Of a stretch of 64,000 nt of DNA, positions 58,501-61,500 are shown one piece after another. Within the stretch, counting starts at the first letter, position 1; every line of letters begins with the position of its first letter. Where the stretch lies: NCBI GenBank assembly GCA_002269645.1, contig NIVC01000527.1, positions 62,001 through 126,000 of the forward strand. The letters run 5' to 3'. The notes below the pieces were generated by a model. The model worked only from the letters and a program-made list of their open reading frames with translations, searched no databases and had not been told where the DNA came from. This DNA comes from Macrostomum lignano (taxonomy: Eukaryota). Position numbers and translations under genes: made by a program.

Positions 58501-61500
58501 CACGTGATCCCACCAGCACTCGGAGAAGTTGGGCAGCTGGTGCTCAAGCGTGTACTCCAATATCTCGAACATAAAGCTGAGCACGCAGCAGAGCCAATAG
58601 TCTCGCAATATGAGAGTTTTAAGCCACCAGCCGAAGAAATGCACGGTCACAAAGCCGTCCAGTTTGTCCCAGACATTGTGAAACGGATCAGTGGCGTTGG
58701 CCGGATCGTAGATCAAGCAGTTGCCGCCGTAGTCCTTCTCTGGCAGGGGCCGGCCGAGCTCAGGGTCGAAGTAGCGCAAAAGCTTTCTGGCGTCGTGGAC
58801 GTTCTGGAGCGGTGGGGAAGGGGGAAGCTTCTCTCTCTCTCTCTCTCTCTCTCTCTCTCTCTCTCTCTCTCTCTCTCTCTCTCTCTCTCTCTCTCTCTCT
58901 CTCTCTCTCTCTCTCTCTCTCTCTCTCTCTCTCGCTTCCAGCCCTGACGAAAAATTTACCTAATTCGAAATATCGGCAATCCAACTAAATTGACTTTGTT
59001 CAGTCCTTTCTACCGTGTCAGGGCCTGAGATTGGAGGTGCCCTCCTCTCTCTCTCTCTCTCTCTCTCTCTCTCTCTCTCTCTCTCTCTCTCTCTCTCTCT
59101 CTCTCTCTCGCTTCCAGCCCTGACGAAAAATTTACCTAATTCGAAATATCGGCAATCCAACTAAATTGACTTTGTTCAGTCCTTTCTACCGTGTCAGGGC
59201 CTGAGATTGGAGGTGCCCTCCTCTCTCTCTCAGAGATTCAAGAGAGATTCAAATAAAACTGTAATAACTGTAACAATCAGAGAACAGCTCGTCAGATTCT
59301 TCACAGCCAATCAGAGAACAGCTTGTCAGATTCTTCACAGCTAATCAGAGAACAGCTTGTCAGATTCTTCACAACCAGTCAAAAAACAGCTTGTTCGCAG
59401 CCAAGATCTTCAGAACCAATAAAAAACAGCTTGTTCACAGCCAATATTCTTCACAGCCAATCAGAAAACAGCTCGTCAGATTCTTCACAGCCAATCAAAA
59501 AACAGCTTGTCAGATTCTTCACAGCCAATCAGAGAACAGCTCGTCAGATTCTTCACAGCCAATCAAAAAACAGCTTGTGAGATTCTTCACAGCCAATCAA
59601 AAAACAGCTCGTCAGATTCTTCACAGCCAATCAAAAAACAGCTCGTCAGATTCTTCACAGCCAATCAAAACACAGCTTGTCAGATTCTTCACAGCCAATC
59701 AGAGAACAGCCTGTCATATTCTTCTCAAACAATCAGATAACAGCTTGTCAGATTCTTCACAGCCAATCAAAAAACAGCTCGTCAGATTCTTCACAGCCAA
59801 TCAAAACACAGCTTGTCAGATTCTTCACAGCCAATCAGAGAACAGCCTGTCATATTCTTCTCAAACAATCAGATAACATCTTGTCAGATTCTTCACAACC
59901 AATAAGAGAACAGCTTGTCCTATTTTCCATAACCAATCAGAAAACAGCAAATAATTTGATTTACTCTTGCCAAGAAGATAACTAATGAGTTTTTCTAGTT
60001 TTTAGCTTTGGCATTTCTCTAAAAGACCTAACAAATGGGGGATACTATTGACATATTCAAGTTTCTAACCACAATAAAGACAAAGAAACAGCAAAAAAGG
60101 ATATTCGAACGCTAAATTAATTAATGGTAATGACTACACAAAGAACAGGCCAAAAAGGGGGATTAAAGAGACAAGGCAAAGCAATATAACTAGCGCAGTC
60201 TAGCTACATGCAAACAAGCTCACGAGGAGGATAGCAGGAACAGTTAAGAATGGCGCGCAGCTTGTTAAGAAAGGATAATAAAGAATAAAGGCAGGGGAGG
60301 AGAGAAAGAGGTAAGGAAATTAAAATTTGGGCTAGAGAGAAGAGAACTTCAAAGGATTCCGGAAATTGAGCTTGAGCAGCACGCAAACTAAAGGATAATT
60401 CAGTTTACAATATATGACCGTACTAACTGACTGTACTAAAGTACTATCTGATTTACAGAGTACAGTCAATAGGCAGGACAGAAGGCACAGACAGCTAGCT
60501 TAGTGAAATATCACACTAATTGGATCAAATTGGAACTGTGTTTTTTGGAAAAAAATTTCCACAATCCCGACTTCCCATCTTGCTATTGGCACATCAGGTA
60601 CGCGTAAGTGTACTGTACATAGTGCTGACACATTGTGAATATTCACACTACTATACTGTGAATGTACACTACTATACTGTGAATGTACACTACTATACTG
60701 TGAATGTACACTACTATACTGTGAATTTACACTACTATACTGTGAATGTACACCACTATACTGTGAATGTACACTACTATACTGTGAATGTACACCACTA
60801 TACTGTGAATGTACACCACTATACTGTGAATGTACACTACTATACTGTGAATGTACACCACTATACTGTGAATGTACAATACTATACTGTGAATGTACAC
60901 CACTATACTGTGAATGTACACTACTATACAGTGAATGTACACTACTATACTGTGAATGTACACTAGTATACTGTGAATGTACACTAGTATACTGTGAATG
61001 TACACTACTATACTGTGAATGTACACTACTATACTGTGAATGTACACCACTATACTGTGAATGTACACTACTATACAGTGAATGTACACTACTATACAGT
61101 GAATGTACACTACTATACAGTGAATGTACACTACTATACAGTGAATGTACACTACTATACTGTGAATGTACACTACTATAATGTGAATGTACACTACTAT
61201 ACTGTGAATGTACACTACTATACTGTGAATGTACACCACTATACTGTGAATGTACACTACTATACTGTGAATGTACACTACTATACTGTGAATGTACACC
61301 ACTATACTGTGAATGTACACTACTATACTGTGAATGTACACCACTATACTGTGAATGTACACTACTATACTGTGAATGTACACCACTATACTGTGAATGT
61401 ACACCACTATACTGTGAATGTACACTACTATACTGTGAATGTACACTACTATACTGTGAATGTACACCACTATACTGTGAATGTACACTACTATACTGTG

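Follow-up and report, generated by a model that had tools for sequence, protein, structure and literature searches.

A tandem PLE-type minimal hammerhead in an intronic (CT)n microsatellite of Macrostomum lignano and its predicted blocking helix

The locus and its repeat unit

The window, i.e., the whole stretch of 64,000 nucleotides of Macrostomum lignano DNA that was analysed (contig NIVC01000527.1, positions 62,001 to 126,000, forward strand), contains exons of a phosphatidylserine synthase gene (Table 1). Just upstream of the 3' splice site of the exon at 58498..58809, and antisense to this gene, an intron harbours a 111-nt unit that is duplicated head to tail with 100% identity (176-bp period, 2.1 copies according to TRF). 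Both units, A and B, are embedded in (CT)n tracts, 65 bp of the 176-bp period, i.e., a third, being pure (CT)n. The (CT)52 tract upstream of unit A reads as (GA)n on the sense strand of the host gene, and the closest match of the phosphatidylserine synthase exon was 78% identical.

Table 1. Positions of the features in the window (CM R1 is the covariance model described in the text; its E-values are rough because of a shortened calibration)
Feature	Position	Strand	Evidence
Copy X, diverged relative of the unit	3041..3160	+	CM R1 40.9 bits, E 3e-9; sequence; alignments
Phosphatidylserine synthase exon	58498..58809	-	Pfam PF03034, E 3e-38; tblastn of homologues
Further phosphatidylserine synthase exons	62000-61896, 58160-58038, 57063-56950	-	
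(CT)52 microsatellite, upstream of unit A	58830..58933	+	TRF and sequence
5' flank of unit A, CGCTTCCA; within-unit 5' strand of distal helix	58933..58940	+	
Hammerhead copy A, degenerate PLE-type minimal type-I	58941..58977	+	CM R1 21.0 bits, E 1.6e-3
Post-cleavage region, homologous to 3' end of L003/L016-type PLEs (GGCAA...GACTTTGTTC...)	58975..59012	+	Alignment
32-nt 3' extension past the point where related PLEs meet a microsatellite; carries the 3' arm of the hairpin	59013..59044	+	
(CT)32.5 microsatellite between units A and B; loop of the hairpin	59045..59109	+	TRF
Hairpin 5' arm, CGCTTCCA and GCCCTGAC; second block is helix I 5' strand and C3-C7 of copy B	59109..59124	+	
Hammerhead copy B, identical to copy A	59117..59153	+	CM R1 21.0 bits
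Unit B 3' arm; favoured partner of 59109-59124 in two-unit transcript	59193..59215	+	Base-pair probabilities
(CT)5.5 short remnant closing the array; unique sequence beyond	59221..59231	+	

Copy X is composed of a well-formed hammerhead (3041-3089; helix II GGCCCA/UGGGCC, helix I AAACC/GGUUU), followed by a 3' region of about 78 nt that ends at a (TATC)n tract. It occurs a second time at 5957-6076 (hammerhead 5957-6005) as part of a 2916-bp tandem repeat. No PLE protein match was retrieved from the window (tblastn, E <= 1e-3), and an RT + GIY-YIG ORF between pseudo-LTRs, as in an autonomous PLE, does not occur within it; the window copies are PLE fragments or non-autonomous derivatives. A MITE with terminal inverted repeats and a purely microsatellite-mediated duplication of unique intron DNA were considered as well and were dropped on the PLE homology.

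The minimal hammerhead and its relatives

The unit contains the core CUGANGA ... GAAA in type-I order, with U16.1-H17 preceding helix I. In copy A, helix I consists of three base pairs (58941-43 with 58975-77, GCC:GGC), the core CUGACGA (58944-50) is followed by a bulged A (58951), and helix II (58952-57 with 58961-66) is closed by the loop ACC. Downstream of helix II, GAA (58967-69), a palindromic AUAU (58970-73; A15.1 to U16.1), C17 (58974), and G1.1 (58975) follow, so that cleavage is predicted at 58974^58975 in copy A and at 59150^59151 in copy B, the two hammerheads being 176 nt apart. A helix III hairpin does not occur in the unit; instead, the AUAU palindrome spans 15.1-16.1 and could form a dimeric helix III. 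This palindrome is invariant in the 14 family copies that were aligned or listed, and the core blocks are the same in the unit, copy X, and the foreign PLE copies. An alternative architecture, with cleavage at GUC 59017-19, a 46-nt 'helix III' (AUAUCGG/CCGUGU), and the helix of the blocking hairpin as helix I, was rejected, as its helix I would start 2 nt off register, no model supported it, and the family comparison places cleavage at AUAUC^GG (58974/5).

Relatives of the unit were found both inside and outside the window. The unit and copy X have two exact blocks of 10 and 11 nt in common, at equal spacing, and differ by compensatory changes in helix II and helix I. A scan of genome_contigs with these two conserved blocks retrieved a 1005-aa RT + GIY-YIG ORF (L003) with the motif on either side, the two copies being 3.5 kb apart, and one copy next to a second PLE ORF (L010). 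Further loci (L016-L027), reached through homologues of the L003 ORF, also have PLE ORFs adjoining the motif, and each of them carries CUGANGA-A-[6-7 bp helix II]-GAA-AUAU-H^GG, in most cases with a (TA)n tract 35-47 nt downstream. The other matches, namely one in viral_contigs (L015) and 10 of the 13 in genome_contigs, lacked helix II and were due to chance. Similarly, a scan of metagenomes with an interior 20-mer of the element returned one chance bacterial match only (L001).

A covariance model built from five foreign PLE hammerheads only, with none from the window (CM R1), recovered both unit copies as well as copy X. Scores are 65-71 bits for the five copies used to build it and 52-63 bits for other foreign copies; apart from the unit and copy X, no match with E < 0.1 was found in the window. 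Covariation among the five foreign copies involves changes on both sides in 7 of the 11 pairs (5 of the 6 pairs of helix II at family level), with 96% of the cells pairing and none of 500 shuffles reaching the observed score. Helix I covaries too, as GCC:GGC in the unit, AAACC:GGUUU in copy X, and UUGCC:GGCAA and CACC:GGUG in relatives. As judged from these sequence comparisons, the hammerhead is real at the family level, and that of the unit belongs to the known PLE "minimal" type-I class (min-HHR).

The absence of matches to the Rfam hammerhead families (Hammerhead_1, Hammerhead_3, Hammerhead_II, HH9, and HH10; gathering score or E <= 10; 58700-59400 and 2980-3180) may suggest instead that there is no ribozyme, CUGANGA and GAAA having met by chance and the hairpin being a chance inverted repeat such as expected in 64 kb. 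Indeed, about four CUGANGA...GAAA cores and about two composite hairpins are expected per shuffled window. However, the Rfam models expect a helix III hairpin, which is absent from the min-HHR class, so that failure to match them is to be expected. Moreover, the blocks in common with copy X, the compensatory changes, the recovery of both unit copies by an independent model, and the occurrence of the motif beside RT/GIY-YIG ORFs elsewhere speak against coincidence. This reading is scarcely tenable and, as far as covariation and CM R1 can tell, already refuted.

The min-HHR class has been described from PLE pseudo-LTRs (Cervera & de la Pena 2014, PMC4209133) and is characterized, in the available part of that paper, by a helix II that is long and preceded on its 5' side by an unpaired nucleotide, a short helix I, and the lack of helix III; min-HHRs are active as dimers, display low activity in vitro, and most copies are solo truncated PLEs. 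The motif reported here has the same type-I topology, with CUGANGA followed by one unpaired nucleotide, a helix II of 6-7 bp in the relatives, and a helix I of 3-5 bp. Likewise, a palindrome, here AUAU, replaces the helix III hairpin, helix III being possible between two copies, and the motif flanks RT + GIY-YIG ORFs, although solo truncated copies are more frequent. Unlike the published min-HHRs, as portrayed there, the unit copies at 58941 and 59117 are degraded and possess a 3' extension complementary to the 5' half of their own ribozyme. Their helix I of 3 bp is short, since 4-5 bp is given for the class in the same part of the paper, and helix II, although in the family register with four compensatory A-U pairs, reads A.C, AU, AU, UA, UA, U.U, with the A.C mismatch at 10.1/11.1, and amounts to +1.7 kcal/mol when folded alone. 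Judged by its 3-bp helix I, its A.C mismatch, and its AU-only helix II, the hammerhead of the unit is decayed.

The predicted blocking helix and its competition with the ribozyme fold

The sequence-only reading had drawn a nested 16-bp hairpin that loops out the microsatellite and sequesters the ribozyme. Its elements were all retrieved. GTCAGGGC (59017-24) is exactly complementary to GCCCTGAC (59117-24; 8 perfect bp), TGGAGGTG (59032-39) pairs with CGCTTCCA (59109-16) through six Watson-Crick and two G.U pairs, the 7-nt bulge (59025-31; CCTGAGAT-type) is present, and the loop (59040-59108) is made up of CCCTC and (CT)32. Moreover, GCCCTGAC does include stem I and the catalytic CUGA, its GCC and CUGA being helix I and core according to the family model and covariation. 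Evaluated exactly as drawn, the hairpin has an energy of -20.0 kcal/mol. The 3' extension contains GUCAGGGC...UGGAGGUG, complementary to the flank, the helix I 5' strand, and C3-C7. As the unit is duplicated with 100% identity, the 3' arm has two equivalent partners, a second 5' arm being located at 58933-58948.

Window-wide, a hairpin of this specification does not exceed chance, given that dinucleotide shuffles contain 2.2 +/- 1.7 such composites per window, along with about 143 plain inverted repeats of 8 bp within 130 nt. Within the element, the complementarity does exceed chance. When the unit's 3' end is paired with the 5' half of the hammerhead together with its flank, the duplex reaches -26.2 kcal/mol (z = -4.4), a value attained by 0.05% of the shuffles (p about 5e-4); without the flank, the unit 3' region and the hammerhead 5' half yield -18.3 kcal/mol (z -3.3).

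Helix I and C3-C7 are covered by the 8-bp helix, which prevails in the predicted folding. When folded in long genomic context, a hammerhead-competent structure would cost +9.2 to +9.8 kcal/mol, and in a two-unit construct about +7.4 kcal/mol, compared with +2.4 kcal/mol for the other window copy and 0.7-5 kcal/mol for most foreign relatives, so that self-cleavage of the unit is predicted to be poor. Tertiary contacts of the hammerhead, its active dimeric form (a pseudoknot), folding during transcription, and proteins do not enter into these energies. The geometry of the predicted ensemble differs from the drawing. For a transcript of two units, pairing of each 3' arm inside the unit to which it belongs (P 0.99) is favoured over pairing across the microsatellite (P 0.004), at all tract lengths tested. 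Looping out of the tract is thus predicted for the hammerhead-processed 176-nt monomer (P 0.99), for which the hammerhead-fold costs derive from the linear molecule, and not for the longer transcript. Likewise, the distal 8-bp helix, although present in the sequence, is not predicted to form in the two-unit transcript (P about 0), because pairing to the CU tract itself takes its place; in the MFE alternative (-22.6 kcal/mol), the GA-rich arm pairs GGAGG/CCUCC and GAGA/UCUC with the start of this tract.

Tuning of the competition by microsatellite length, as had been proposed, is contradicted by a length scan under the thermodynamic model only. The helix probability stayed at about 0.99 for n = 0-100 and the hammerhead penalty remained at about 7.4 kcal/mol from n = 20 upwards, the real tracts having n = 32 and 52. 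In addition, with the blocked state lying lower than the active fold by 7-10 kcal/mol, the helix would act as a lock rather than as a switch.

Conservation of the pairing across family copies, on which the switch had been staked, was not encountered. In copy X, the 3' region pairs with the hammerhead 5' half at -6.8 kcal/mol (z 0.0), or at -8.5 kcal/mol (z -0.1) with the flank included, and eight foreign PLE hammerheads gave -2.6 to -9.8 kcal/mol (z +0.7 to -2.7) for the duplex without the flank, a comparison that involves one independent copy of the same genome, i.e., copy X, and distant relatives. End-to-end pairing kept in copy X by covariation (AAACC/GGUUUG by eye) was considered and rejected (z -0.1 to -0.2). 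Some anti-core pairing may nevertheless be a subgroup trait, as a short UCAG:CUGA hairpin with a matching change of N7 occurs just upstream of the hammerhead in L003/L016/L025-type PLEs, as well as in L017 and L021. It does not hold in L010, L018, L026, and L027, and with about five of nine lineages pairing versus 37% expected by chance, it is not established as a family trait.

These results bear on the idea of a selected off-switch of an active retrozyme, in which (CU)n is looped out and tract length tunes the escape of the hammerhead. The dominance of a helix over helix I and C3-C7, complementarity beyond chance within the unit, closure over the CU tract in the processed monomer, and the blocking folds known from viroids, plant retrozymes, and some mussel retrozymes are in line with it. 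However, the lack of an effect of tract length, the near absence of cross-tract pairing in the two-unit transcript, the displaced distal helix, the lack of the pairing in copy X and foreign relatives, the size of the energy gap, and the degraded ribozyme (21 bits versus 41-71 bits for the others) make it very unlikely. What stands is that the 8-bp helix outcompetes the hammerhead fold in the predictions; nothing demonstrates that the hairpin or the (CT)n repeat works as a tuned switch.

Origin of the locus and comparison with known elements

The locus is probably a tandem 5'-truncated PLE 3' end, or a mini-retrozyme, within intronic (CT)n, with a blocking helix that is not a selected switch. 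Two identical head-to-tail copies of a 3'-terminal PLE fragment of about 110 nt, or of a PLE-derived non-autonomous 'mini-retrozyme', would lie in a (CT)n microsatellite of the phosphatidylserine synthase intron, in antisense orientation. In + strand RNA, the predicted stability of the blocking helix greatly exceeds that of the ribozyme fold, and the ribozyme would therefore be locked off constitutively. In long transcripts, the arm would find its partner inside the same unit, pairing across the CU tract being confined to a processed monomer. The duplication may have arisen through head-to-tail insertion or through unequal exchange between CT tracts, and the complementarity may be a copy-specific relic or by-product, owed, for instance, to a PLE tail, to the structure of an inverted junction, or to drift after the copy had died. 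Counting against a relic, both non-Watson-Crick pairs are G.U pairs with the departure on the ribozyme strand, the pattern expected from selection on RNA.

PLE insertions are known for a microsatellite bias, 5' truncation, head-to-tail or partial tandems, and tails of 30-40 bp, as set out in the available part of Craig et al. 2021 (PMC8557442). Similarly, heavy 5' truncation, head-to-tail order, and microsatellites at the junctions are found here, and both window copies possess an extra 3' segment of 32-38 nt. The 3' extension of the unit, with its 32 nt, may therefore correspond, by length, to such a tail. The tracts named in that part of the paper are (TA)n, (CA)n, and (C)n, those of the window being (CT)n and (TATC)n. 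As related PLEs end beside (TA)n tracts, the (CT)n looks like a usual PLE landing site or 3' junction, contrary to the earlier suggestion that the repeat is a structural part of the element rather than its landing site.

Retrozymes have been described as pLTR derivatives present in monomeric, dimeric, or multimeric form (Li et al. 2026 preprint). Like metazoan non-LTR retrozymes (PMC7229834; Li et al. 2026 preprint), the locus consists of short head-to-tail repeats with type-I hammerheads from PLE pLTR ends, and its 176-bp period falls within their 170-400 nt range. Unlike metazoan retrozymes, there are two copies only and (CT)n makes up a third of the period. Vertebrate retrozymes were reported to be excluded from introns (Li et al. 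2026 preprint), whereas the present copy is intronic. That circles block their own hammerheads, as had been assumed, holds for viroids and plant retrozymes, whereas the hammerhead is stated to remain unblocked in most circles of metazoan retrozymes (Cervera & de la Pena 2020, PMC7229834); at the present locus, it is predicted to be strongly blocked. Nucleotides of the core and helix I are predicted to be sequestered by a helix of greater stability, as they are in viroids, viral satellites, and plant LTR retrozymes, where the monomer is thereby left uncleaved. In these systems, the fold is the conserved rod of a replicating circle and the double hammerhead is transient during multimer synthesis, whereas the present helix was seen in a single genomic copy, a decayed one, and relatives do not share it. 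A blocking helix of this kind is not described in the available part of the min-HHR paper (PMC4209133).

Alternatively, the 176-nt repeat could be a working mini-retrozyme monomer with internal (CU)n, the helix serving as a rod or panhandle for stability, ligation, or RT priming and not as a cleavage regulator. The period of the head-to-tail dimer within the published retrozyme range, the tandem pair of minimal hammerheads required for a dimeric active form, and a helix that joins both ends of the processed monomer would fit. This is unlikely, however, as there are only 2.1 copies that are 100% identical, internal (CT)n is found in no other window copy, copy X is solo with end-to-end pairing that is not significant, the ribozyme core context is degraded, and the + strand is antisense to the host gene. 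A still bolder version, highly improbable, would be a live PLE-derived mini-retrozyme in which (CU)n forms the loop of a terminal helix that silences a dimer-dependent hammerhead in monomers or circles, the microsatellite being part of the mobile RNA and not only its landing site.

Under the preferred reading, the element is of an already known kind, a retroelement remnant, and its finding adds little beyond one more solo or duplicated Penelope-type minimal hammerhead, in intronic (CT)n. Its use is methodological in the first place, as Rfam misses the min-HHR class entirely and a model of five PLE hammerheads of other organisms recovered four window copies. In addition, the blocking helix offers a cheap and concrete test case of whether a min-HHR copy, once decayed, is kept silent by the sequences flanking it. 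If the helix and the internal (CU)n were kept in many copies genome-wide, this would be the first microsatellite-bearing retrozyme.

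Identity of the hammerhead

The 111-nt unit, present as copies A and B, carries a hammerhead ribozyme, as the sequence-only reading had stated; a covariance model (R1) and covariation in foreign Penelope-like elements (PLEs) agree with this. Searching the unit region against Rfam gave no match at gathering score or E <= 10, and a hammerhead with cleavage site GUC at 59017-59019 was ruled out, being out of register. The ribozyme was reached through a weak internal match between the unit and copy X, a diverged relative (3041-3160, duplicated at 5957-6076), which have CCCTGACGAA and CGAAATATCGG in common at the same spacing. 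Between these blocks, X contains the perfect hairpin GGCCCA-GUC-UGGGCC and the unit AAAUUU-ACC-UAAUUC in the same register, both sides of helix II being changed in four pairs. A two-block search, covering a prokaryotic genome collection, returned mostly chance bacterial matches, and also three motif copies on two contigs labelled 'MAG: bacterium' (L003 and L010), whose helix II has a third sequence, GUGUUU/AAACAC. Their elements are PLEs; both contigs carry RT plus GIY-YIG ORFs, minimal hammerheads and long (TA)n tracts. In L003, two motif copies 3.5 kb apart lie on either side of an ORF of 1005 aa, and L010 has the second ORF of this kind. The two contigs (L003, CBDDTI010000339.1, 1-3644; L010, CBDDTI010000562.1, 1-6157) come from a genome that serves as GTDB representative under the label 'MAG: bacterium isolate 3a0c8501-...'; they are almost certainly of eukaryotic (invertebrate) origin and were placed in a bacterial bin. 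ORF homologues gave further loci, among them one of the sea cucumber Holothuria leucospilota; all show the arrangement CUGANGA-A-(6-7 bp helix II)-GAA-AUAU-H^GG... and most have a (TA)n tract 35-47 nt downstream. In five foreign copies, 7 of the 11 pairs covaried, and the score of the real alignment was attained by no shuffle. R1, built solely from these five (65-71 bits), scored other foreign copies at 52-63 bits. Within the window it matched copy X (40.9 bits, E 3e-9) and the unit at 58941-58977 and 59117-59153 (21.0 bits, E 1.6e-3), with no other match at E < 0.1. Two weaker matches, 49211-49236 (+; 14.5 bits, E 0.11) and 37522-37564 (-; 14.0 bits, E 0.16), the latter containing CGAAATAACGG, are probably noise.

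The window hammerhead is the minimal type-I hammerhead (min-HHR) of Cervera & de la Pena 2014. As described in PMC4209133, helix II of this class is long, helix I short and helix III missing, one nucleotide 5' of helix II is unpaired, activity is low and confined to dimers, and genomic copies are mostly solo truncated PLEs. The unit's hammerhead is degraded, with an A.C mismatch at 10.1/11.1, four central A-U pairs in helix II closed by a U.U mismatch (+1.7 kcal/mol for this helix by itself), and a helix I of only 3 bp. A further decaying copy occurs in the foreign locus L024 (2847-2897; 30.5 bits), with a mutated core (CACUAUCGUAG for CCCUGANGAAG), and helix II and GAAAUAUCGG intact.

Features of the tandem locus and of its hammerhead
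Feature	Position	Strand	Source
(CT)52 tract, upstream of first unit copy	58830-58933	+	sequence, TRF
Unit, first copy (A), 111 nt	58934-59044	+	sequence
(CT)32.5 tract between unit copies	59045-59109	+	TRF
Unit, second copy (B)	59110-59220	+	sequence
(CT)5.5 after copy B, then unique sequence		+	sequence
Helix I	58941-43 with 58975-77	+	
Core and bulged A	58944-50, 58951	+	
Helix II	58952-66	+	
GAA	58967-69	+	
Palindromic AUAU	58970-73	+	
C17; predicted cleavage 58974^58975	58974	+	
Hammerhead of copy B	same anatomy as copy A at +176	+	

Genomic setting and 3' extension

The units form a tandem array (TRF: period 176 bp, 2.1 copies, 100% identity); no further close copies and no PLE ORF were found within the 64-kb window. 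The host gene codes for a phosphatidylserine synthase, and the element occupies one of its introns, some 20 nt before the 3' splice site of exon 58809-58498. This gene is on the minus strand, so the ribozyme strand is antisense to the host transcript. On the host sense strand (58810-58933), (GA)52 ends about 20 nt short of that exon's polypyrimidine tract and AG acceptor, and a purine repeat so near the splice site could affect its splicing.

Past the cleavage site, the first 38 nt of the unit can be aligned with L003/L016-type PLEs at their 3' end. At the point where the latter reach (TA)n, the unit has a further 32 nt (59013-59044) and X a further 38 nt or so; the 3' arm of the hairpin proposed earlier lies within the unit's extension. 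PMC8557442 describes PLE insertions as heavily 5'-truncated, head to tail and biased towards microsatellites, often with a 30-40-bp 'tail'. Non-LTR retrozymes are reported to occur as pLTR-derived monomers, dimers or multimers (2026 preprint). Besides the unit, more than 40 distinct micro- and minisatellite arrays were counted across the 64-kb window; their periods range from 4 to 257 bp, and copy numbers of 10-160 are common. Several of them yield long spurious ORFs and repeat-type Pfam matches. With so many arrays, a recent duplication of 176 bp through unequal exchange between CT tracts is unremarkable, the genome having a strong tendency to duplicate in tandem; head-to-tail insertion is an equally possible origin. 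Copy X, within a 2916-bp tandem duplication (602-7112, mostly (TATC)n), is preceded at about 70 nt by a short (TA)6 and followed immediately by (TATC)n, so that the better-preserved copy is also microsatellite-linked, with a different repeat.

A 34-bp minisatellite (59274-59948, 19 copies) begins 43 bp 3' of the element. Its repeat has CTCGTCAG or CTTGTCAG, i.e. CUGACGAG on the other strand; R1 gave no match there, and it does not look hammerhead-derived. In the extension, CGTGTCAGGGC (59013-59024) resembles GCGTGCAGGGC (10/11 matches, one indel), which the foreign PLEs L018 (~6240-6262) and L019 (~5058-5078) have some 25 nt 5' of their hammerhead core. This likeness of short sequences may be due to chance; if the two are homologous, the window family and these PLEs would be circular permutations of each other.

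Competition between helix and ribozyme fold

The pairings listed in the sequence-only reading were matched base for base, namely GTCAGGGC (59017-24) with GCCCTGAC (59117-24), eight Watson-Crick pairs, and TGGAGGTG (59032-39) with CGCTTCCA (59109-16), six Watson-Crick and two G.U pairs, with a 7-nt bulge and a loop of CCCUC plus the CU tract (-20.0 kcal/mol as drawn). Its assignment to stem I and the catalytic core holds with the true hammerhead, GCC being helix I and CUGAC C3-C7. Window-wide, such a hairpin does not exceed chance: dinucleotide shuffling of the window gives 2.2 +/- 1.7 composite hairpins built to the same specification, along with about 143 inverted repeats of 8 bp no more than 130 nt apart, and MFE z-scores are only -2.0 for the unit and -2.5 for the hairpin region. 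Inside the element, complementarity does exceed chance: the duplex of the unit's last 37 nt with its first 21 nt reaches -26.2 kcal/mol (z -4.4), a value attained by only 0.05% of shuffled 3' ends.

The 8-bp helix is predicted to compete with the hammerhead, as proposed. Forcing a hammerhead-competent secondary structure costs the unit +9.2 to +9.8 kcal/mol in -100/+120 context, X +2.4 and most foreign copies 0.7-5 kcal/mol. The claim that the hairpin loops out the CU tract stands for a hammerhead-processed 176-nt monomer only (P 0.99 in the folding model); in the two-unit transcript, both 3' arms stay within the unit, each joining that unit's 5' arm (P 0.99) rather than pairing across the tract (P 0.004). 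The distal 8-bp helix is predicted in no context, the GA-rich arm taking the start of the CU tract instead. Tuning by microsatellite length found no backing in the model, as helix probability stays at about 0.99 from 0 to 100 repeats and the hammerhead penalty falls from 12 kcal/mol at n = 0 to 7.4 at n = 20 and is flat from there on, a range that takes in the real tracts of 32 and 52 repeats.

Conservation was measured as the duplex energy of the hammerhead 5' half with the downstream 3' region. This was -18.3 kcal/mol (z -3.3) in the unit, -6.8 (z 0.0) in X and -2.6 to -9.8 (z +0.7 to -2.7) in eight foreign copies; with flanks, X reaches -8.5 (z -0.1) versus -26.2 in the unit. The pairing is thus not conserved, the observation named beforehand as refuting the switch, and the strong blocking helix is peculiar to one, twice-copied, sequence. 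A short UCAG:CUGA hairpin immediately upstream of the hammerhead, in which a change at N7 is matched on the other strand, occurs in some PLE lineages and fails in others. Furthermore, a CTTCATTTG motif, conserved 25-45 nt 3' of the cleavage site in six foreign PLEs (L017, L018, L019, L020, L021 and L027), complements (A/U)GAAG of the same element's hammerhead core and helix II start, with z only -0.3 to -2.7.

Interpretation of the locus

Of the earlier interpretation, the hammerhead and a helix that would sequester it are retained, while the switch, the microsatellite dependence and the conservation are not. Most likely, the locus is a PLE minimal hammerhead that has decayed and that a complementary 3' extension, particular to this copy, keeps locked; its setting would be a microsatellite junction of the kind favoured by PLEs. 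It is set apart only by its association with (CT)n and by the unusual strength of its self-block; otherwise the locus is of a known type.
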